Shown here one piece after another: positions 1-10,578 of a DNA stretch of 10,858 bases (positions are counted from its first letter, which is position 1; each line of letters starts with the position of its first letter). A program made the translations under genes and the position numbers. The notes beneath the pieces are model-generated. The model was not told the origin of the DNA and did no database searches. It saw only the letters and a list, made by a program, of their open reading frames with translations. Location of the stretch: NCBI GenBank assembly GCA_965644295.1, contig CBFFRP010000562.1, forward strand, positions 1 to 10,858, read 5' to 3'. Origin of the DNA: Paraphysomonas bandaiensis. Lineage: Eukaryota; Protista; Chrysophyceae.

Positions 1-149
1 TTTGAAGACTAGGGTGAATGATAATTAAAATTTAGTTGTTTGTATATTTTCAATTGTAATATATTTTAAAAATATTTTACTAAAATATTGTATTATATTG
101 TTACTTTTCATATAAATCTACTGTATTACTACTTACTACACCAGCCAAC

Positions 150-3100
150 CTACGCTGTAGCCCGTTTCCGCCGTACACGACCATCACCATCTAGTTCAAT
201 AGGTCGTCTAGTAGATATATACGAACCCATACCTTGCTCATCCTGAGCCCGCAAATCTTGCTGTGTGGGAGGAGCCCCGCTCGCATCCCCAGACCCACGG
301 TCTGTCAAGGTCTGCAACCTCACGACTGTCTGTTGACAGGTTGGGTCAGGACTCTCCTGGAACCCTCCAGGTCTTCCCTGGTCCAGCTCCCTGGCTGGCG
401 TAGTACTCAGGGCGTCCCCCTTTCCTATGTACCCGGTATTCCCGGGGGTTTCTGCAGTCATACGCACCACGTCTTCGACGTGTATAGGCACCCGGTGCTC
501 TATATGCTCGCGACCTGCAGTAACAAGTGAACGGTATGCTACAATCACACCCTTACGTTCTACAACTCTTGTTGTCTTATACAGAAGTCCGTCCTCATCA
601 TCAATATGATACGTTCCTTCTAAGCTGACATAGTCGGATGCAAGCTTGGGTCTAGCGGCCTCCCGCACTCGAAGAGCATCAATCTCTGCGAAATACTTCT
701 CTGATCGTGATGGCGTTGACTCATCAGTCAATATATGGACTGTAGTCACCACCTTGTTTGATTCAGGAAGATATACATGGTATCCTACCTTCTCATCAGA
801 GTAACCCATTAAATATCCAACTAGAGCCTTATCCTCCCAATCCTTTCGTCGATCCGCCTTCGGTGAAAGAACATAAGTTCGACACCCCCATACCCTAAGA
901 TATCTCAAATTTGGAGGCTCACCCGTTAGAAACTCTATAGGAGACATATACCCTTTATCTGTTTTCGTTGGCAATCGAATCAAAATATATCTGGCTGCCA
1001 TGTATGCATCCAGCCAAAATTGCGGTGGCAGTCCAGATTGGATTAGCATTGCAAGAGTCATCTCTCCAGCAGTTCTGAACTTCCTCTCCTCTATGGCATT
1101 CATTTCTGGAGAGTCTGTTGAGCTCCACGTATGTTGATAGCACTCCTGTGTCCTAAGATACTGACGCAGCTCTTCACTGATTAACTCTCTTGCACCATCT
1201 GCATGATAGTGCTCCATCTTGAGCTTGTACCTTCTAACATCTCCTCTAAATAGCTCTTTGAAGACTTCTAAGATCGCTTCCCCAGTTCTGTGGACTAAAC
1301 CCGTCGCCCAGAACATTTTGCTGGCATGATGCGTTATCTTTAACACATACCTCTCACCTCCTCTAGCAGGACAATTTAAGTACACAGCGATATCTGCTGA
1401 AAAATTCGGTCTAACGGAATTCTCGTCCTTCGTTCGGAAGCTGACTCGGGTTATCTTAGACCTGGCACACACATCACACAAACACTGATTTTTGTGTACC
1501 TTGGCTGTGAGGTGTTTCCGTTTCAACCCTGTACCCATGATGAGCATCCTCTTATGTGCCTCTACTAAAGCATGTTTGTTGAAGTGACCCGCTCTCCGAT
1601 GCAGCAACTCCAGCTCGTCCTCACCAGTCCTATCGCTAAGATTTACTTCACAATTACTCGGTGTAGACACATCTGGAAGCTCCAACAGCTGCTGAGTTGG
1701 AACTGCAGTCATTCCATTCTTCATGGGTCCCTCCAGTACCAGTTCACCAGTATTACAGTCATAAATTTGGATCCCATACCACACCGTGAATCGATAGCCC
1801 ATTTCGTTCAGCTTACGTCCGGAGCACAGGCATCGATTGATCTGATCTGAAATTTCTATGTCTCTCCATGCTCCACGGGAACCCACACTTGTGATATGAA
1901 TCTCTGATCCCTTCTTAGAGCCGTTTATCACCTTTGATGTATTCATATGAGTGTCAAGCATGGTCACATCATTCATCAAGAACATTGATGATGAACAGCA
2001 GGTGTCAATATATGTATAATGCATGTCATCATTTACACTACATATATTCGTTTCATGTATATTGCATGACAATTTCATAACATCCTCGATCATATTTGCT
2101 TCATCTTCATCAGAGAATTCTGCTGGTTCTCCACGCCGTATATTCTCTACTGTCAGCAGCCTTTTGTCCGGCTTCCTACCATGATTCTTCCCTTTCTCTC
2201 CTCTTCTAGAATGCTTTTTCTTCGTCGTTGGACAATCAGCAGCAAGATGTTCCAGAGACTTGCAATTTCTGCATCCCGTGTATTCAGCACTTCCAGGACG
2301 CTGCCCTGATATCTCTCCATCCTTCTTCCTCTGCTTCCTCCTGCACTGTTCAGTTGAATGGCTATGAGGAATTCCTTCTTTCCTGCAATATCTACAGTTG
2401 CCCTTCTTACGCTTATCCCGTTCCGTTCGAGACCGTTTGCTCTTTTCAATGAAATTCAGCTCCTCCACCTTCTTGCGTTTCCGCTCTAACGCAATCCTTC
2501 CAGGAATGGTATCATCATACCGTTCTATCTTCCTTGATAATGTTGCATAATCAACATCATCAGGCATCAAATACAAAGCAACATTCAGAGGAGCATATTC
2601 TTCATTCAACAGACCTTCTCGTAACCGTGTTATTTTTGAGAGCTCCGATATGTCCTGCTGCTGCTCCTGTAGCTCTTTCAGCAGTATTTCAAACCGTATT
2701 ATATAGTCCTTCGCAGTCTCCTCCGGACGCATACGGAAAGAGCCATACTGAGTCAACAGCTCACTGATCTTGTTTTGCTTCCCTCCAGCAAAGCACTTCT
2801 TCAACTCATCAATCATAATATGCGCCTTAAACCTGTTGCTTCCTTTTCCATCAGCCTTGAACCCTTTATGTAGAAGATGGAATTTCTGAAGCGCCTTCGA
2901 AGATGTTTGCACTGCCTCTCTGCAGTACGAATACGCTATGGCATTCGCCTTCCAGTACTTCTTCACAGCCTGTCTGTAAGACTTCTCCTCCATTAACGTG
3001 AGTGGCTGTTCCCCAAAGTCGCTTTCCTTCGGTGGTGGCTCCACCGCTACTTCACTTTGCTCTTTCCTCATGAGGAATGTTTCGAAGTCCTCAATCCATT

Positions 3101-3188
3101 GTTCAACATTGCTCTCATTAAACTGTGGCACTACTCCTCTATCCTCCTTCTCTCCTCCTCGCTCGCTACCATGTTGAAAAATGCTCAT
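150..3188 (-). CDS. Ty1/copia-type Gag-protease-integrase polyprotein (1012 aa), ending before RT/RNase H
   Basis: Motifs read in copia order. Gag-like region (ETAKDYIIRFEILLKEL...LREGL). Zn knuckles CRYC-x8-H-x4-C (~2343-2396) and CRNCKSLEHLAADC (~2232-2273). Protease-like YIDTCCS (DTC at 1998-2006) followed by LCSGRKLNEMGY. Integrase HHCC (LHRRAGH...CDVC). Catalytic core SADI / HADGARE / NAIEER. Copia-typical LRYLRVWGCRTY...GYLMGY...GYHVY after the core. No YVDD or SDADW motif before the stop. Confidence 0.93.
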   Translation of the reverse strand: MSIFQHGSERGGEKEDRGVVPQFNESNVEQWIEDFETFLMRKEQSEVAVEPPPKESDFGEQPLTLMEEKSYRQAVKKYWKANAIAYSYCREAVQTSSKALQKFHLLHKGFKADGKGSNRFKAHIMIDELKKCFAGGKQNKISELLTQYGSFRMRPEETAKDYIIRFEILLKELQEQQQDISELSKITRLREGLLNEEYAPLNVALYLMPDDVDYATLSRKIERYDDTIPGRIALERKRKKVEELNFIEKSKRSRTERDKRKKGNCRYCRKEGIPHSHSTEQCRRKQRKKDGEISGQRPGSAEYTGCRNCKSLEHLAADCPTTKKKHSRRGEKGKNHGRKPDKRLLTVENIRRGEPAEFSDEDEANMIEDVMKLSCNIHETNICSVNDDMHYTYIDTCCSSSMFLMNDVTMLDTHMNTSKVINGSKKGSEIHITSVGSRGAWRDIEISDQINRCLCSGRKLNEMGYRFTVWYGIQIYDCNTGELVLEGPMKNGMTAVPTQQLLELPDVSTPSNCEVNLSDRTGEDELELLHRRAGHFNKHALVEAHKRMLIMGTGLKRKHLTAKVHKNQCLCDVCARSKITRVSFRTKDENSVRPNFSADIAVYLNCPARGGERYVLKITHHASKMFWATGLVHRTGEAILEVFKELFRGDVRRYKLKMEHYHADGARELISEELRQYLRTQECYQHTWSSTDSPEMNAIEERKFRTAGEMTLAMLIQSGLPPQFWLDAYMAARYILIRLPTKTDKGYMSPIEFLTGEPPNLRYLRVWGCRTYVLSPKADRRKDWEDKALVGYLMGYSDEKVGYHVYLPESNKVVTTVHILTDESTPSRSEKYFAEIDALRVREAARPKLASDYVSLEGTYHIDDEDGLLYKTTRVVERKGVIVAYRSLVTAGREHIEHRVPIHVEDVVRMTAETPGNTGYIGKGDALSTTPARELDQGRPGGFQESPDPTCQQTVVRLQTLTDRGSGDASGAPPTQQDLRAQDEQGMGSYISTRRPIELDGDGRVRRKRATA

Positions 3189-3427
3189 TTTACACTAGAT
3201 CACAGAGAGAATTTGTCGTAAGACTAGATAGATTTATTAGTATCGTTTACACGAAGTTGTGATAACCAACACTAACTCATTATAATCCCTGCATAATATC
3301 CTACATATGCGAACCTCTCGTTACTGAACATATCTTGAACGATCAAACTATTTCAGTTTCTCAATATCATCACAGCATTTGTACATCACTATATTTCACT
3401 GTATTCTCGTACATTGTCTTGAAGTGA
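150..3427 (-). mobile_element. Copia-derived segment lacking RT/RNase H; LTRs not identifiable in the window
   Basis: Protein motifs as above. The ORF stop is followed almost directly by very AT-rich DNA (1-130). The upper boundary is set at the adjacent repeat module and is approximate. Confidence 0.7.
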
Positions 3428-3595
3428 CATAGTAGTGAATGTCTGATTATTTAGCAATAGGCGTTGAGACCTTGCAGCAATTAGTGGCTAGAAGAATGCT
3501 AGTCATACTAGTTAGACCACTACCCGTAACTAATCAATACAAACTCTTTTATCCTACTATTTAACGCTACGAAAGCTGCTTGTGCGTCGCCGCAA
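3428..3595. repeat. Conserved non-coding module, copy A (upstream of the copia ORF and downstream of the LINE ORF on the minus strand)
   Basis: By manual alignment, 3542-3595 matches 7364-7424 at 46/54 positions plus a 7-nt insertion in copy B. Exact 15-mer AGCTGCTTGTGCGTC at 3574-3588. Second block TAGCAATAGGCGT at 3452-3464 and CATAGTAGTGAATG at 3428-3441. Confidence 0.85.
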
Positions 3596-6500
3596 GCACC
3601 AAGGTGCAACCACTTCCGTTCTTTTTGTGTGATATGAAATTCGCCTTTGTCGTGTGTCCGTGGACTCACCGGCGCTATTGATCTGGGGGTCTCCCTTTGG
3701 GATGGGTCTCCATTGGTGTTGGAGGGGGTTCAGCGTTCTGGATTAGGGTCCTGAGTGCACCTAGTTCCAGATGTGTGGGTTGGGAGTGGTGGGGATTGTT
3801 GGGAGGAGGAGTTGGGTTTGTAGTATGTGTTACTGTGCTCCTGTGGGGCCGCGGGTGTAGATAGAGTTGTCGAAGCCGTCGGCGTTGTGGAGGTCTGGGC
3901 AGTCCAGTGCTCTGTCGGGTAGGACCTGTGAGGTGTGCACGTGTGTCTGGAGTCGGATACGCTGTGGGGGGTCTTCGTTGGACCCCTAGTAGTCGAAGGA
4001 CTCTCGGACGTTGTCTTGACTGACTGCGTTTCGGACGGGGTCTCGGGAGTAGCCTGGGCGGCCTTTTGGACATGGTGATATAGCGACAACCGCGATCCTG
4101 TAACATAAGCTTCGCTGCAGTGTAAAGCGGTTGCAGGAGATTAATAACCACTGTTTCTAGGTTCCGTAGACTGTGAGCCGTCAGGTGGTTGTGTATGTCA
4201 TCTCCGAAGACCGTTTCCAGTTGGGCTGCTGTGATGGTTCCAGTCCAGTATCTCTCGACCTGTGGGATGGAGGGATTCCAGGCTCTGCTGGAGAGTCTCC
4301 GTAGTGCAGATGTGATCCAGTTGGGTAAGGTCTGAGTTCTCTGTATTTCGTGTAGCACATTTTTATGCGATTGAAATGCAGTTTCCCTTATTTGGGTGAT
4401 GGATTCATGTGTGCAGTCGAGGCACATATGTTTTAGGGAATCTAGTCGAAACCCGCAGTCAGAGCATGCGGCTTTGGTCAGGTCAAGCCCCTGTTTGGTT
4501 TTGGCCCGGTTCCTCCCTATGCAGAAAGATTTGTCCCATGTCAGTGCCGTGTTGAGAATTCTTTGGCGTAGATTTGAGCTGAGTTTGTCTTTGGATGCAC
4601 TGCCATCCGCTTGAGCTAGTTTGCGCGGGAGGTGTACTCCGCTATTGGTCCAGTAGCCAGGCGCTCGATCAGGATTGTTTCCGTAGCGTTGATCTCTGGT
4701 TGAAGTGTAGTTCTCAAGTGTCCTTAGGTCGCAGAGATCTTGGAAATCAGTAAGGAGTGGGCTAGAGTAGTATGGCCGTCTTGTACTGTGCAAACGCCAG
4801 TGCCATAATCCAGCGGTTAGTAAGCGTTCAATGGCACTGTCAATCGCAATTGTACAGACAGTGTAGTTATTTTTTCCAAGGATGCGATCGACTTCATGCC
4901 AGTCTTCACCCGCGACTGCGTCCGCAATATAGATGCCCTTGTCCTCAAACGTCCACTCCGTTTCATCTGTGGTACGTCGTTCGGGATGGGACCTCACCCA
5001 GGTCACCTGTCGTTTGCAATCTCTACTGGCCGCGATGCTTTCGAGTAGTACCCCTTTTGCACGGTGACCGAGAGCTCTGCGTCTTGTGGAGAGTGCTTCC
5101 TCAGTACGGGTGCACACTGCCTGACAGTCTGTGTGGCTTCTTATGTGTTCGGGAATGCGTGTTGAGAGTATAAGCCCCATGGCTGTGCCTATGAGTTCAT
5201 ATGCGTATGAGTCCAAACCTGGCACATCACGAAAGGGTGTATCTAGTCGTAGTATTATGGTTGTACCATCTTCCCAGGCATTTTCTGGGGGTAAGTAGAC
5301 GACCGCTGCACCTCCTCGGTGTGTCCATCGTGTTCGCGGATTGACATGAGTGAGGCGACGCGTGGAGAGCGCACTGGCTGTGTATGATCCATCTGTGAAG
5401 ATTGCCTTGAAAGTATCTGGTTGGACGCTATTAAGGCCGAGTTCTTGTTTTAGATTGGTCAGCATGTGTTCATCCTGTGGTTCGGGGGGCTCAGGTTGCT
5501 GAAGGGTAAGGCCCAATTCCGTTCCCCATTCCCTGAGGCTGAGAACATAGTGGTGGTATTGGGGCTGTGGCTCTGTTGTCTGAGTGAGTAGAAAATGTGC
5601 TGCTTGACCTGCTTCTCCCCCGAGGGTTATTGCGCGCTGTAGAGATCCCCATTTTTGCTCCTGCGCCGAGTCTGAGAAACGTTTCATACCTAATCCGTTG
5701 TGCTTGAGTGAGAGGTAGATCAGTTCCGTGGGGTATCCAGGGCCTAGACTGAGGGCCTTTCTGTAGAGGGTTGCGCAAGCAGCGTCAATTTCTCTGTACC
5801 AGTGTAGCGGCCATGAAGCTTTGGTGGCTCTATAGAGCAAAGTCGGTATGATTTGGGTCTCGATAACCATGACTTTACAGCCGGCTGAGGCCTGTTTAAT
5901 CCCTAGGTGTGTGGTCACGACTTTCAGGTATTTTAGACACCAATCATGGGAGGCCTTGTCTGTGATTGTGAGAGGAAGGTCTGCTCCGAGGTAATGTATC
6001 GACTCTAGTGATGTTTGGATAGGGACTGGGTGTGGACGCCACGACCAGTCGTAGAGAATGATGTAGCCAATGGGGTCGGAGGACTTGTTGGAATCTTGTA
6101 GGATCGGAAACACTGTGCAAACTACTTTGGGGATAGAGAGTTCCATTCCCGAAAGTACGCAGAACGCAGATATTTGTTGGGCAATGAGTTGGGCAGCGTG
6201 TATGGATTTAGCTATTGTGTTAAGATCATCCGCGAAGGAGATCTTTATTTCGCCGGTAGTCGGAGTCGTGAGTTGAATAGTTGGTAACGTTGGACTCGTT
6301 GTTGACAGTTCAATGTCCAGCCACGTGAGAAGGATGTCGTAGAGTGCCACCCAGGCGCATGTGGATTCTGTGCCCCCTTGGGTGATACCCCTTTCGGCTT
6401 CGAAACCCAGACTGAATAGTGCAATGAAGTGGCCGTCTGCGGACAGGAGGTCAAGGAGAGAACGTGGCTCTATGTTGTTTGCCATGAATGGTGTCCAGGG

Positions 6501-7278
6501 AAATGTTAGACCGCCGGCATCTAAGTTGCCAAACCAGTCAACTACATCGTCCGGAACGCCCAGTCGTGCCCACGCGAGACGCATGAGGTTAGGCGCAATT
6601 GAGTCGAAGGCCTTCTTGAAGTCCCAGAGTGTACATATATGCTGGTCGCCTTTTCGTCTTGCTTCTTCTGCAGCCGCGAGTACCCTTAGTATCGCTGTGT
6701 CCGTCCCGTTCCTCCAGCGATAACCATGCTGGGACGGATGCAAAACTTTCTGTTCCTCCCATACGGTAAGAATTCTATGAGTGATTATCCTTGTTAATAT
6801 TTTCCTACTGACTTCAAGCAGACCAATCGGTCGGAGATTAGTGAGGGAGGATTCTCCTGGTTTCTTGAGAATGGGAGACATTACCCTGTCTCTCCACCAA
6901 ATGGGCACATGTTTATGTTTCCAGAGAGATCTGGTGAGGATGTAAGCCTCTCGCTGAACTACCGGTGGCCAGGATTTGACCATGTTGGAGGAGACCATTG
7001 AGGGTCCAGGCGCGCGGTTGAAGGAGAGAGAGTGAAGTGTGCAGTAGAATTCATCCTGGGTGATGTCTTTTGCAAGAGTAGATTTGAGTGTGGCTGCCAT
7101 GGCCGGAGTGGTCTTGGTACAAAGGGCCCGTCGTAACCCCAGTTGCAGGGGAAGAGGGATTTTCGAGCGGGGGTGGAGTGGTTCCTGGCATGTCGCTGAG
7201 CCCGGATCAAGAAGGGATTTCTGTTATATTTAACGCGACTTGGGCTGTTTGGTGTTTGGTAGTTTCGTCATCCTCGTC
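3596..7278 (-). mobile_element. Endonuclease-less non-LTR retrotransposon body between two diverged direct repeats
   Basis: RT-RH ORF with no poly(A) tail visible after the stop at 3675. Bounded by the repeat modules at 3428-3595 and 7279-7424. Confidence 0.7.
3675..7100 (-). CDS. Non-LTR (LINE-type) reverse transcriptase + RNase H + C-terminal CCHC-like zinc finger, no endonuclease (1141 aa; frame open upstream to 7223)
   Basis: LINE RT motifs: RAPGPS (domain 0), PILKKPG...NLRPIGLL, QHGYR, WDFKKAFDSI, RGITQG, FADDL (FADD at 6225-6236), HYLG. RNase H: IFTDGS (D at 5391-5393), AYELIG, HTDCQAV, VTWVRSH, IADAVA. Zn finger CSDC-x8-H-x4-C (~4413-4466). In-frame TAA at 7224-7226. Confidence 0.93.
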   Translation of the reverse strand: MAATLKSTLAKDITQDEFYCTLHSLSFNRAPGPSMVSSNMVKSWPPVVQREAYILTRSLWKHKHVPIWWRDRVMSPILKKPGESSLTNLRPIGLLEVSRKILTRIITHRILTVWEEQKVLHPSQHGYRWRNGTDTAILRVLAAAEEARRKGDQHICTLWDFKKAFDSIAPNLMRLAWARLGVPDDVVDWFGNLDAGGLTFPWTPFMANNIEPRSLLDLLSADGHFIALFSLGFEAERGITQGGTESTCAWVALYDILLTWLDIELSTTSPTLPTIQLTTPTTGEIKISFADDLNTIAKSIHAAQLIAQQISAFCVLSGMELSIPKVVCTVFPILQDSNKSSDPIGYIILYDWSWRPHPVPIQTSLESIHYLGADLPLTITDKASHDWCLKYLKVVTTHLGIKQASAGCKVMVIETQIIPTLLYRATKASWPLHWYREIDAACATLYRKALSLGPGYPTELIYLSLKHNGLGMKRFSDSAQEQKWGSLQRAITLGGEAGQAAHFLLTQTTEPQPQYHHYVLSLREWGTELGLTLQQPEPPEPQDEHMLTNLKQELGLNSVQPDTFKAIFTDGSYTASALSTRRLTHVNPRTRWTHRGGAAVVYLPPENAWEDGTTIILRLDTPFRDVPGLDSYAYELIGTAMGLILSTRIPEHIRSHTDCQAVCTRTEEALSTRRRALGHRAKGVLLESIAASRDCKRQVTWVRSHPERRTTDETEWTFEDKGIYIADAVAGEDWHEVDRILGKNNYTVCTIAIDSAIERLLTAGLWHWRLHSTRRPYYSSPLLTDFQDLCDLRTLENYTSTRDQRYGNNPDRAPGYWTNSGVHLPRKLAQADGSASKDKLSSNLRQRILNTALTWDKSFCIGRNRAKTKQGLDLTKAACSDCGFRLDSLKHMCLDCTHESITQIRETAFQSHKNVLHEIQRTQTLPNWITSALRRLSSRAWNPSIPQVERYWTGTITAAQLETVFGDDIHNHLTAHSLRNLETVVINLLQPLYTAAKLMLQDRGCRYITMSKRPPRLLPRPRPKRSQSRQRPRVLRLLGVQRRPPTAYPTPDTRAHLTGPTRQSTGLPRPPQRRRLRQLYLHPRPHRSTVTHTTNPTPPPNNPHHSQPTHLELGALRTLIQNAEPPPTPMETHPKGRPPDQ

Positions 7279-7281
7279 CAT
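7207..7281 (-). other. Short upstream ORF MDEDDETTKHQTAQVALNITEIPS* overlapping the start of the open RT frame
   Basis: The ATG sits at the edge of module B (7281-7279), with TGA at 7209-7207. The RT frame is +1 relative to it and opens at 7223. Confidence 0.35.
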
Positions 7282-7424
7282 GTAGTAATGAATGCATTAC
7301 TAATAGCAGTAGGCGTGTAAGAGTCAGATCCAAGTTAGCGAAACAATTTAACAAATAGTGCTTAACTCTGATATCCTATTATTTTACACTACACACTACG
7401 ATAGCTGCTTGTGCGTCACCGTAA
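7279..7424. repeat. Conserved non-coding module, copy B (immediately upstream of the LINE ORF on the minus strand)
   Basis: AGCTGCTTGTGCGTC at 7403-7417, TAGCAGTAGGCGT at 7304-7316 (12/13 match to copy A) and CATGTAGTAATGAATG at 7279-7294. Same block order and orientation as copy A. Confidence 0.85.
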
Positions 7425-7470
7425 CCTTCAAATAATTCAAAAAGTTATGACAGACATAGAGAGTGACAAG

Positions 7471-7834
7471 GAAAGAGTTATATAATACGATACGAAGAGC
7501 CTCTCTAGCTCAGGAATAAGAAAGCCTAATAGGCAGCTACAGCTTCCGGTTGTCCCATTATCTGCCTCTGTGTATACTTACTTTTCTGATGCAGATTGGG
7601 CTCCGACCCAAGCCGGATATATACATATTGTAGTTTTGCTGCAGGTGAACAAACCACATGCTTGTTGGCAGTCTATTATACAAGTCACAGCCTTGACTTC
7701 ATCAATGCAGAGTGAGTATCAGGCCATCAGTCTTCGACTGTACGAACTCGTACGACATCCACTCCATTTTCCTGTGTACAACCAGAGCGATCGTGATTTA
7801 CCACTGATCCCACCCAGCAGTTTCCAATACCTTA
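7471..7834 (+). pseudogene. Decayed Ty1/copia RT C-terminus / RNase H remnant
   Basis: One frame reads ERVI*YDTK...YFSDADWA...CWQSIIQVTALTSSMQSEYQA...YNQSDRDL. This matches the copia consensus RVLRYL...YSDADWA...SWxSxxQxxVAxSSxExEYxA...DNQSAI, with a stop, deletions and a lost catalytic D. Confidence 0.8.
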
Positions 7835-7958
7835 AACAAAGTTGGACTCGAACCTTTTCGTGGTGTTCTCTGGGAAACTAACGTAAGCTACATATATAGT
7901 CAACAGATATTGTTCTGCCCACTCATAGCCTAATAATCTTGTCTGGCACAAGGGACAC
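7835..7958. repeat. Dispersed direct repeat, copy 1 (27 nt shorter than copy 2)
   Basis: AACAAAGTTGGACTCGAACCTTTTCGTGGTGTTCT...TTCTGCCCACTCATAGCC...ACAAGGGACAC aligns with 8535-8683. Confidence 0.85.
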
Positions 7959-7989
7959 TTATATTGGAAGCAACAACAGTACGTATAAC

Positions 7990-8400
7990 TCACACTCAAT
8001 AATCAATTAGTAAATTGACTTATTCATTCTTTGTCATTCTTTACAATTATATTCTCTCAACTTCCAATCAATATTATTCGATCTTAGATATATATATATT
8101 ATTATGTAGTCAATGTAATATATTTTTGGGTTAGTTCATAATATATATTATTTATGTTCTCTAACATAATTCATAGTATACCATCATATATATATAATAT
8201 TAAACCATTAGTAGTTCATGTACTGCAGTTCTAAACACCTGTATTCTTAAACTAGCAGGTATATAGTTCAAATATATATATAGTTAAAAGTACGGATTTT
8301 AATTTCTCAAACAAATAGTTCTTTAGAGGTAGTTTCTCTAGGAATATACCTATATATAATATATAGGTAGATAGGTAGGTACCTAATCATCAGGGCCTAT
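7990..8400. other. AT-rich low-complexity tract with several short (TA)n runs
   Basis: TATATATA runs near 8088-8099, 8186-8196, 8272-8282 and 8351-8365. No ORF. Confidence 0.7.
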
Positions 8401-8534
8401 GGCCATATATGAGAGTAGTAGCATCCCAAAACATCATGTCACTAGCTCGAAGGAATAGAAACAATTCTAGACGACGATATGGATTCATGCGCAAGTGTCA
8501 TATCACCAACATTGCACGACTAAATATCCCCCTC

Positions 8535-8683
8535 AACAAAGTCGGACTCGCACCTTTTCGTGGTGTTCTGGGGGATAAGTACCGGAGAGATTCTCTCTGT
8601 GAAACTAACGTGAGCCGCAAACATAGTCAGCAGATATTCTTCTGCCCACTCATAGCCGAATGCATGTGTGGTACAAGGGACAC
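8535..8683. repeat. Dispersed direct repeat, copy 2
   Basis: Aligns with 7835-7958 and carries an extra 27 nt at ~8570-8596. Confidence 0.85.
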
Positions 8684-9068
8684 CAATCAGTGTCACTTGT
8701 AAGTCGAGGTAATACCAAAACCTGGTAAAGCAATTTCACCAGGTTTCATATATAAGTATTGAGTTATTATTTTACTGTAATTTGTATCTGAGAGGTTAAA
8801 GATAAAGAAAAAGTCGCAAGTATAGTTGTTATTAGCAGTATTTATTGCGTTAAAAGTTGGCCCTGCTATTATTACTTGTGTTTTGTAATATCATATTCTC
8901 ATATAGCTACACCTGCTTCGCTTGAGACTGCAAACGCTCCAACCGAATAGCCTGATTTCGGATACATTGCATACGCATATAGCCATCTTTACCACTACTA
9001 CTTACAGTAGTATTAGTACCTATGCTCGGAAACGACGCGGCAACAGCCGCTGGGGGCACATTGCTAGT

Positions 9069-9106
9069 AGGTGGAGGATCATAAGCAGGTGAAGGATCAT
9101 AAGCAG
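9069..9106. repeat. 18-bp tandem duplication
   Basis: AGGTGGAGGATCATAAGC AGGTGAAGGATCATAAGC AG. Confidence 0.8.
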
Positions 9107-9207
9107 TTAGTACAGTGTATAGTAACAACGCACAACAATAATCAGAACAATACCGCATATATACGACATACGACCCCGTCACCATCTTTATGAACAGTAT
9201 TACTTAC

Positions 9208-9309
9208 CCTGCTCGTGCGCTTTCGTGGTATCTCTTCCTCCGCCTCCGGGTCGTCGTTGGATATGTCGCCACGAATGTTGACAACATTCTTCTTCCCGTT
9301 GCACTTCTC
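9208..9309 (-). other. Putative 102-nt spliceosomal exon (repeated at 9433-9534, partial at 9658-9721)
   Basis: On the minus strand: acceptor GGTGTAG| before it, donor |GTAAGT after it (9207-9202), and branch point CACTAAC at 9337-9331. Stop-free, and its length is a multiple of 3. Confidence 0.6.
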
Positions 9310-9432
9310 CTACACCATAATATGTACACAGTTAGTGCAGTGTATAGTAACAACGCACAACAATAATCAGAACAATACCGCATATATACGACATACGACC
9401 CCGTCACCATCTTTATGAACAGTATTACTTAC
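9310..9432 (-). other. Putative 123-nt GT-AG intron (repeated at 9535-9657; related 144-nt intron at 9064-9207)
   Basis: GTAAGT...CACTAAC...GTAG. The 9064-9207 copy has TACTAAC, a pyrimidine-rich tract and CTAG. Confidence 0.6.
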
Positions 9433-9723
9433 CCTGCTCGTGCACTTTCGTGGTATCTCTTCCTCCGCCTCCGGGTCGTCGTTGGATATGTCGCCACGAA
9501 TGTTGACAACATTCTTCTTCCCGTTGCACTTCTCCTACACCATAATATGTACACAGTTAGTGCAGTGTATAGTAACAACGCACAACAATAATCAGAACAA
9601 TACCGCATATATACGACATACGACCCCGTCACCATCTTTATGAGCAGTATTGCTTACCCTGCTCGTGCACTTTCGTGGTATCTCTTCCTCCGCCTCCGGG
9701 TCGTCGTTGGATATGTCGCCATG

Positions 9724-10030
9724 TCTGAGAGTGGTATCAGCTCTGCAGCAATCTGATGTATGTGTACGTGTCTGTCTGTCTGTCTGTGTGCTCAGGAGGT
9801 GTGATCCACACAACAATGAACACCTCATCCGATAAACCACACCTCCTGAGCACTCCTCACTGTCATCAACAATGTCACCATATTAACATCAGAAGATACT
9901 AACTCAGAAGATACATGCATCACTCTATATGTATGCATGTGTATGGTGTGTTAAGTTATGCATATATATATATTATTGTCATGATGTGCGTGTTGTAAGC
10001 ACTGCTCGTGCAGTGTGGTTGCGGTGTAGT
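9724..10030. repeat. ~305-bp direct repeat, copy 1 (possible small non-autonomous element)
   Basis: Aligns end to end with 10277-10578. 9777-9881 is identical to 10330-10434, while the flanking parts are diverged and microsatellite-rich. Confidence 0.9.
9788..9853. repeat. Perfect 16-bp inverted repeat with 34-nt spacer (identical copy at 10341-10406)
   Basis: GTGCTCAGGAGGTGTG (9788-9803) ... CACACCTCCTGAGCAC (9838-9853). Confidence 0.9.
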
Positions 10031-10276: not shown

Positions 10277-10578
10277 TCTGAGAGTGGTGTGACCTCTGCA
10301 GCATTCGGAGGTGTGTGTATGTATGTGTGTGTCTGTCTGTGTGCTCAGGAGGTGTGATCCACACAACAATGAACACCTCATCCGATAAACCACACCTCCT
10401 GAGCACTCCTCACTGTCATCAACAATGTCACCATCTAAGCACCAGAAGATACTGACTCAGAAGATCCATCCCTCTATATGTATGTATGTGTGTGTGTGTG
10501 TGTTAAGTTATGCATATGTATTATGGTCAAGATGTGCGTGTTGTAGTCACTGCTCGTGCAGTGTGGTTGCGGCGTAGT
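10277..10578. repeat. ~305-bp direct repeat, copy 2
   Basis: Aligns with 9724-10030 at an offset of about 550 bp. Confidence 0.9.

Follow-up and report, generated by a model that had tools for sequence, protein, structure and literature searches.

Many long interspersed nuclear elements (LINEs) require their own 3′ tail, and their short interspersed nuclear elements (SINEs) carry the same tail; in the LINEs called stringent, the ORF2 protein binds a stem-loop in this 3′ tail (PMC4176376, PMC3747384). The present work concerns a 10,858-nt stretch of DNA from the chrysophyte Paraphysomonas bandaiensis (the entire small contig C562, GenBank CBFFRP010000562.1, hereafter the window), in which a non-coding module occurs twice, at 3428–3595 (copy A) and 7279–7424 (copy B). 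With a probability of roughly 85%, the module is the 3′-terminal cis element of a 9.4-kb LINE, designated LINE A, copy A being that element's own tail and copy B an old fragment of the tail of a SINE-like retroposon. As such, the locus is a new example of the known system in which LINEs and SINEs share a tail. What is new in it is the length and bipartite build of the tail, together with a helix predicted to bridge the two conserved blocks.

The systems most similar to that of LINE A are eel UnaL2/UnaSINE1 and zebrafish ZfL2-1/-2 (the Okada laboratory model). As in these systems, the tail lies at the extreme 3′ end of the LINE, after the stop codon of the open reading frame (ORF), and a short non-coding retroposon of unrelated body terminates in it as well. 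Common features also include the lack of poly(A), a fixed short terminus, predicted stem-loops in the tail and target duplications. However, the host belongs to a different group of organisms. Instead of one short stem-loop, the tail of LINE A is about 195 nt long and bipartite, with a predicted long-range helix around a variable domain, and no short tandem repeat is evident at its terminus. LINE A is also unusually large (9.4 kb) and possesses a SET domain. In addition, internally deleted derivatives of LINE A resemble the trypanosome pairs RIME/ingi and NARTc/L1Tc (“SIDE” elements); those of LINE A keep the 5′ 1.2–1.3 kb and the last 350–470 nt of the element. Unlike in those pairs, their mobilisation by the LINE is presumptive, and they are located at other loci and not in the window.

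The Repeated Module

Two long ORFs are found on the minus strand of the window, one encoding a reverse transcriptase (RT; 7100→3675) and one belonging to a copia element (3188→150). The original prediction described the module as two conserved blocks on either side of a spacer, placed at the head of both ORFs. The repeat itself stands, since the exact 15-mer AGCTGCTTGTGCGTC occurs twice in the window, at 3574–3588 and 7403–7417, with 0 occurrences expected by chance, the best local alignment of 3428–3595 with 7279–7424 has a score of 53 (the scores of 1000 shuffles averaged 16 and did not exceed 27), and both copies end on the minus strand with CATTCAYTACTA. The spans given for the two copies are valid, but their limits are not the limits of the module, as homology within the family extends to about 3622–3628 in copy A and to about 7432 in copy B. 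The identity and anatomy of the module are established by the comparisons below, in which genome searches covered the 62.5-Mb assembly of 669 contigs.

LINE A and Its 3′ Tail

A query with positions 3400–3680 produced more than 40 matches of 99–100% identity spanning 3430–3680 and ending at 3429–3432, among 2,592 first-look candidates. More than 40 copies, at 99–100% identity, run from the LINE ORF through the module to ...CATTCACTACT(A). In the LINE sense, the ends of more than 40 copies read ...CAGACATTCACTACT(A), after which the sequence is different in each copy. Unrelated sequence with no common target motif follows 26 of the 28 LINE A ends inspected. The terminus of all inspected copies is CATTCACTAC(TA) with no A-run, i.e., a specific end instead of poly(A). 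Because the genomic copies run to the same terminus and then diverge, copy A corresponds to the distal two thirds of the 245-nt 3′ untranslated region (UTR) of LINE A, which occupies 3430–3674 on the minus strand, between the ORF stop codon (3675–3677) and the terminus ...CATTCACTACTA at 3430. Copy A (3428–3595) is thus the last part of the 3′ UTR of LINE A itself, the LINE running on the minus strand from 7221 to 3430. The tail is positioned at the extreme 3′ end of an autonomous non-LTR (long terminal repeat) element, downstream of the RT ORF.

The coding part of LINE A in the window (3675–7221, minus strand) comprises an RVT_1 domain and a C-terminal Cys/His region, and lacks the SET domain, the endonuclease and the 5′ UTR. 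The RVT_1 domain was found in ORF 7100→3675 with Pfam (E = 3.7e-15), and a PDB sequence search matched the same ORF to the RT part of human LINE-1 ORF2p (E about 1e-7). No RNase H domain is claimed, since Pfam returned no hits for the C-terminal 741 aa at E ≤ 5. Genomic matches to the region 6800–7300 all lose similarity to the window at position 7221, and 11 of them have a common sequence upstream of this point. Since the other copies continue upstream of 7221 with common sequence, the window copy is 5′-truncated. An endonuclease-less LINE was considered as a candidate and rejected, the window copy being truncated and the full-length copy having an endonuclease. The same search also revealed diverged LINE families (74–81%).

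The full-length LINE A was found on contig C434. It is 9,400 bp long and has a 5′ end that is fixed in at least 40 copies. The upstream ORF of this copy (L073:4358–9640) encodes 1,761 aa, with a SET domain (aa 1101–1205) located just before an Exo_endo_phos endonuclease, and the RT frame starts 314 nt before the end of this ORF, in another frame. The element sits 12 nt inside a copia LTR and is flanked on both sides by perfect 12-bp duplications (TGTCACTTCAAG), and is an ordinary target-primed insertion. Positions 144–7221 of the window are 99.96% identical to the C434 locus. Read from its first ATG, the RT ORF of the window copy runs uninterrupted for 1,141 codons, and a one-base length difference splits the frame of the C434 copy.

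Besides full-length and truncated copies, two internally deleted derivatives of LINE A are present in the genome. The derivative of about 1.5 kb joins positions 1–1218 to 9051–9400, and the derivative of about 1.8 kb joins 1–1302 to 8931–9400. Each is present in several copies with identical deletion points, and both keep the tail. They look like non-autonomous elements that are still moving. The derivatives were found at loci L010, L011, L019, L027 and L081, L083. Target duplications of 12 bp at C434, of 12 and 10 bp at loci L026 and L045, and of 10–12 bp around the short copies occur along with many 5′-truncated copies, a combination characteristic of target-primed reverse transcription. Duplications were also looked for around the window LINE, copy B and the LINE copy on contig C125, and none were found. 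LINE A is, by all appearances, a recently active non-LTR retrotransposon.

Copy B and a SINE-like Retroposon

The query 7200–7560 gave matches of 78–84% identity limited to 7279–7424(–7432), with 998 first-look candidates. All inspected copies of this type end at the same terminus, followed by unrelated flanks with no common target motif. Longer members have a non-coding body in common, about 490 nt in length, which begins at a fixed 5′ position. Thus, a short non-coding element that has no relation to the LINE in its body also terminates in the LINE A tail, with consensus identities of 100% in block 2 and 96% in block 1. The spacer of copy B is 89% identical to the consensus of the SINE-like element versus 55% to LINE A; hence, copy B (7279–7432, minus strand) is assigned by sequence comparison as the decayed, 5′-truncated tail of the very abundant, approximately 490-nt SINE-like retroposon, of the type with a short spacer. 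DNA upstream of copy B (7433–7820) is single-copy. Two 5′ parts, or heads, of SINE-like elements follow on the plus strand. The one at 7822–7964 (repeat families D3, D5 and D12) matches the start of the family, has many genomic matches and is oriented opposite to copy B, and the other, of the same family, lies at 8530–8683. The degenerate SINE heads of the window had no Rfam match to ribozyme families.

Architecture and Conservation of the Tail

The tail was studied in an alignment comprising the LINE A tail, six older LINE-type tails, taken from loci that also carry other examined copies, and copy B with 24 SINE-type tails. It consists, on the minus strand, of block 1 (3550–3619, tail positions 7–76), a variable spacer domain (3466–3549, tail positions 77–160) and block 2 (3430–3465, tail positions 161–196). 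In block 1, the consensus of LINE A is 96% identical to both the older LINE and the SINE types, and the latter two are 94% identical to each other. In block 2, LINE A and the SINE type agree at every position (100%), and the older LINE tails are 83% identical to either of them. For the spacer, identity amounts to 83% between LINE A and older LINE tails, 58% between LINE A and the SINE type, and 63% between older LINE tails and the SINE type. The SINE-type spacer is about 34 nt shorter owing to an internal deletion. The spacers were previously considered non-alignable, but with more family members they can be aligned, the short type differing by this deletion and by additional substitutions; they are homologous and not unrelated. 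The pattern holds between family consensuses, so the conservation of the blocks is real at the level of once-active lineages.

Predicted RNA Structure of the Tail

When the LINE A tail is folded to minimum energy, UAGUAGG at the end of block 1 pairs with CCUAUUG at the start of block 2, so that the spacer is enclosed. Four helices are predicted on the minus strand. P1 is a closing stem in block 1 (3612–3619 with 3569–3576), P2 is a hairpin with a CUUG loop (3604–3607 with 3596–3599), P3 is a hairpin with a GNRA loop (3591–3594 with 3583–3586), predicted as GCGA in the LINE and GUGA in the SINE, and P4 is the long-range helix between block 1 (3553–3559) and block 2 (3455–3461). The 3′ strand of P4 is followed by about 25 nt predicted to be unpaired, which end in CATTCACTACTA.

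When the P1–P4 model was imposed on the alignment, 93.1% of the cells were paired, and the covariation score was 0.108 compared to 0.090 for shuffled alignments, none of 500 reaching the observed value. Changes on both sides occurred in six pairs, with 2.3 expected. At one pair of P1, older LINE tails have G-C, LINE A has G-U and the SINE type has A-U. For the long-range helix alone, 95.2% of the cells were paired and 8 cells were double-changed versus 1.8 expected (0/500). RNAalifold, run independently, recovered P3 and the long-range helix and added to the latter a GAG/CUC extension, which is AAA/UUU in older LINE tails.

A number of results weigh against the proposed structure and role of the tail. 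RNAalifold did not recover P1 and P2, which form the 5′ domain, and paired this region differently. The folding energies do not differ significantly from those of shuffled sequences (z = −0.54 for the copy A tail and +0.67 for copy B). The aligned tails are close relatives and mostly dead copies with changes common by descent, so the covariation rests on few lineage-level events. Rfam searches were negative, both at gathering scores (the window plus three SINE loci) and, for either copy, at E ≤ 5 (3300–8800). Metagenome scans with a 23-nt block-1 pattern and with the C-terminal 508 aa of the LINE ORF did not detect relatives from other organisms. Taken as a whole, the covariation weakly to moderately supports a structured-RNA reading of the tail. 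This part of the earlier suggestion of a structured RNA stands to that extent, but the covariance-model scan that was to identify the RNA found no known family, and the folding energy is not exceptional.

Proposed Role of the Tail and Alternative Explanations

Three kinds of amplified elements end in the tail, namely the 9.4-kb LINE, its two deleted derivatives and the SINE-like element. We infer that the module is a binding and priming signal of the RT because the sharing of the tail, the 10–12-bp target site duplications (TSDs), the 5′ truncation and the absence of poly(A) match the pattern of stringent LINEs. The tail is thus most likely a cis signal on which the LINE RT binds and primes, with the type of 3′-end recognition described as stringent. 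The RT would bind the structured tail not only on its own RNA but also on RNAs from the SINE-like element and from the internally deleted derivatives. Blocks 1 and 2 would be held together by the pairing UAGUAGG/CCUAUUG with the GAG/CUC extension, enclosing the variable spacer, and the last 25 nt or so, ending in CATTCACTACTA and predicted to be unpaired, could provide a free terminal primer site. Target-primed reverse transcription would then start at the terminal bases with no need for a poly(A) tail. The original prediction had listed a 3′-end signal for the RT among its alternatives, and this part fits, as the tail ends the LINE, its deleted derivatives and an unrelated short retroposon; the accompanying analogy with HeT-A/TART arrays and bdelloid Terminons does not hold.

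That analogy implies that the elements chain head to tail as a rule, either in telomere-type arrays or with the tail serving as a site-specific insertion target. In the window, the SINE tail does lie 57 nt upstream of a LINE copy of the same orientation, the LINE A tail on C125 ends where copy B ends relative to the same linker, and at locus L059 an older LINE tail directly abuts a truncated SINE. Among the loci examined, second tails were counted by hand in the same orientation in 10 cases and in the opposite orientation in 6, but this bias is not significant. As described above, 26 of 28 LINE A ends and all inspected SINE ends lead into unrelated sequence with no common target motif. The nearby pairs at L026 and L045 each have their own 10–12-bp duplications and hence represent independent insertions. 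The LINE/copia block of the window has the same 3′ junction as C434 and is therefore not an independent insertion beside copy B. In contrast to HeT-A/TART and Terminons, the copies are dispersed, with unrelated flanks and 10–12-bp TSDs, the DNA at 7433–7820 is single-copy, and no TTAGGG-type telomere repeat is present in the window. Chaining as a rule is accordingly improbable. The collection of genomic copies with their flanks, proposed earlier as a check, showed the family to be dispersed, with unrelated flanks after the terminus in dozens of copies.

It is very improbable that the module is a functionless tail and that its two copies are a dispersed repeat undergoing neutral decay. Copy B is indeed dead and truncated, individual copies decay neutrally, and the folding energies are unremarkable. 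Neutral decay, however, does not account for consensus blocks that are 94–100% identical on both sides of a spacer of 58–83% identity, where a 34-nt deletion was tolerated, for the retention of the tail by all three kinds of amplified elements or for the covariation at paired positions. The earlier view that the blocks are conserved beyond neutral decay is borne out in this respect by the family consensuses.

A shared promoter or 5′ leader, by which each copy would drive the ORF downstream of it, is refuted. Its appeal is that both copies precede a long ORF on the minus strand, with an ATG after each of them. However, neither ATG is in frame with the long ORFs, and neither belongs to the module. 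The ATG after copy A consists of the last A of the LINE and the first TG of the copia LTR, since this LTR begins at 3431, and the ATG after copy B is located in a separate segment of 57–66 nt. In more than 40 copies the upstream LINE ORF runs on without a break into copy A, the family of copy A ends at 3430, and the 260-bp LTR of an independent copia family separates copy A from the second ORF. The LINE ORF following copy B is a truncated piece, its true upstream part (SET domain and endonuclease) being absent. In other copies the terminus leads into unrelated DNA, and the boundaries of repeat families at 3430/3431 and 7221/7222 part each copy from its downstream ORF. The module thus has no part in starting either ORF. 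Copy A is instead the 3′ end of the LINE upstream of it, and the second ORF is that of an independent copia element, which has an LTR of its own.

The idea that the copies are terminal repeats of one composite, either a bipartite copia–LINE chimera or an LTR-like or TSD pair, deserves next to no credence in spite of the RT and gag–integrase ORFs having the same orientation with one copy before each, since the LINE/copia junction on C434 is a plain full-length LINE insertion 12 nt into an LTR with a perfect 12-bp duplication, dozens of copies of the LINE lack the copia element and vice versa, and copy B belongs to a third family; that the copies are not a TSD or LTR pair had been correctly noted before.

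The reading of the module as the 3′-terminal cis element of LINE A removes a false lead, in that the window contains no shared promoter, no copia–LINE chimera and no endonuclease-less LINE. The window contains an ordinary, truncated copy of a LINE, next to a copia LTR and a fragment of a SINE tail. At the same time, a 3′ cis element is defined for a LINE/SINE system that is very active in its host, a microbial eukaryote that has received little study. The predicted structure offers a testable model in which the blocks pair around a spacer that can be dispensed with, a hairpin carries a GNRA loop and the terminal primer site is left free, and it names the bases to mutate. The tail can also be used as a handle for the annotation of element copies, with about 1,000 to 2,600 first-look candidates per tail query.

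The Linker between Copy B and the LINE

Copy B is separated from the LINE by a linker of 57 nt (7222–7278, minus strand; 62–66 nt with ambiguous end bases), which is 100% identical to C125:233791–233856. The genome holds only these two copies of the linker. On C125, the linker directly follows the 3′ end of another LINE A copy, 2 kb in length, ending in ...CATTCACTAC, and is bordered on the other side by unique DNA near the 3′ end of an apparent coding gene (judged by eye, with no search made). Both linker copies begin after ACTAC and stop at ...ACAGAA, and a 3-nt microhomology (GAA) is present at 7219–7221. Compared with the full-length LINE and the examined loci, the only match of the linker is one of 10–13 nt to the GCGTTAAATA core of block 1. 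The last 35 nt or so of the linker faintly resemble block 1 around this core, and a relationship of the linker to a third, very decayed tail is possible.

Reverse transcriptases are capable of template switching, which yields chimeric retrocopies such as the U6/L1 chimeras and the end-to-end template jumps of R2, and 3′ transduction by LINEs also occurs. The order seen in the window, in which the tail of another RNA and a short piece precede a 5′-truncated LINE, with GAA at 7219–7221, would be expected if the RT had jumped from the LINE RNA to the 3′ end of a second RNA, as in these cases. In contrast to them, the 3′ junction of the window LINE/copia block is shared with C434, and no target duplication was found. 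The presence of a piece with the same ends beside two different tails suggests an RNA intermediate, namely read-through of an old SINE followed by template switching or priming at the tail terminus. In the window, LINE cDNA truncated at 7221 would have used the GAA microhomology to jump to a read-through transcript of the old SINE, at the 3′ end of this transcript. On C125, a new LINE copy could have been primed precisely at the terminal ACTAC of that old SINE copy, replacing the latter. The linker would then be a record, in the window and on C125, of template switching by the LINE RT or of homology-primed initiation at existing tail ends, a proposal that is tentative and rather doubtful. If true, it would represent a natural record of how the enzyme chooses and swaps templates, as well as a route to head-to-tail chains.

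A template-switch origin of the join between copy B and the LINE is thus offered as a hypothesis, to which a DNA-level rearrangement is at least as likely an alternative. Because the 3′ junction is common to the window and C434, either such a rearrangement or a long read-through template has to be assumed. A simple assembly chimera at 7221/7222 is unlikely, since the linker does not adjoin LINE position 7221 on either C434 or C125, and the DNA at 7433–7820 is single-copy.

Copia Element and Other Repeats

The copia LTR (TG...CA, 260 bp) occupies positions 3172–3431 on the minus strand and is followed by a primer-binding-site-like sequence (TGGTAGCGAGC) and the gag–protease–integrase ORF (150–3188). 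The query 3100–3470 returned at least 38 genomic matches of 98–100% identity, every one of which starts at 3431, and the LTR starts one base after the end of LINE A. According to Pfam, ORF 3188→150 encodes a copia-type gag, a zinc knuckle and an integrase SH3-like domain. The LTR repeat was identified on C434. There, the LTR that the LINE struck has internal copia sequence on its upstream side and a primer-binding site with gag on its downstream side; hence, two copia units share one LTR on this contig (tandem copia). The 5-bp flanks of the LTR pair on C434 are mismatched.

The end of a further repeat family is located at 1–135 of the window (at least 40 copies, 80–99% identity, ending at query positions 134–135). 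It breaks the copia element at about 135–144, and the contig end lies inside this family; the copia element of C434 runs on uninterrupted. In the distal part of the window, a tandem repeat with a 225-nt unit is present in three copies of 79–99% identity (9104–9778), and a 222-nt direct repeat occupies 9724–9945 and 10277–10498, the two copies being 553 nt apart. Perfect 16-nt inverted repeats are found inside these window repeats.

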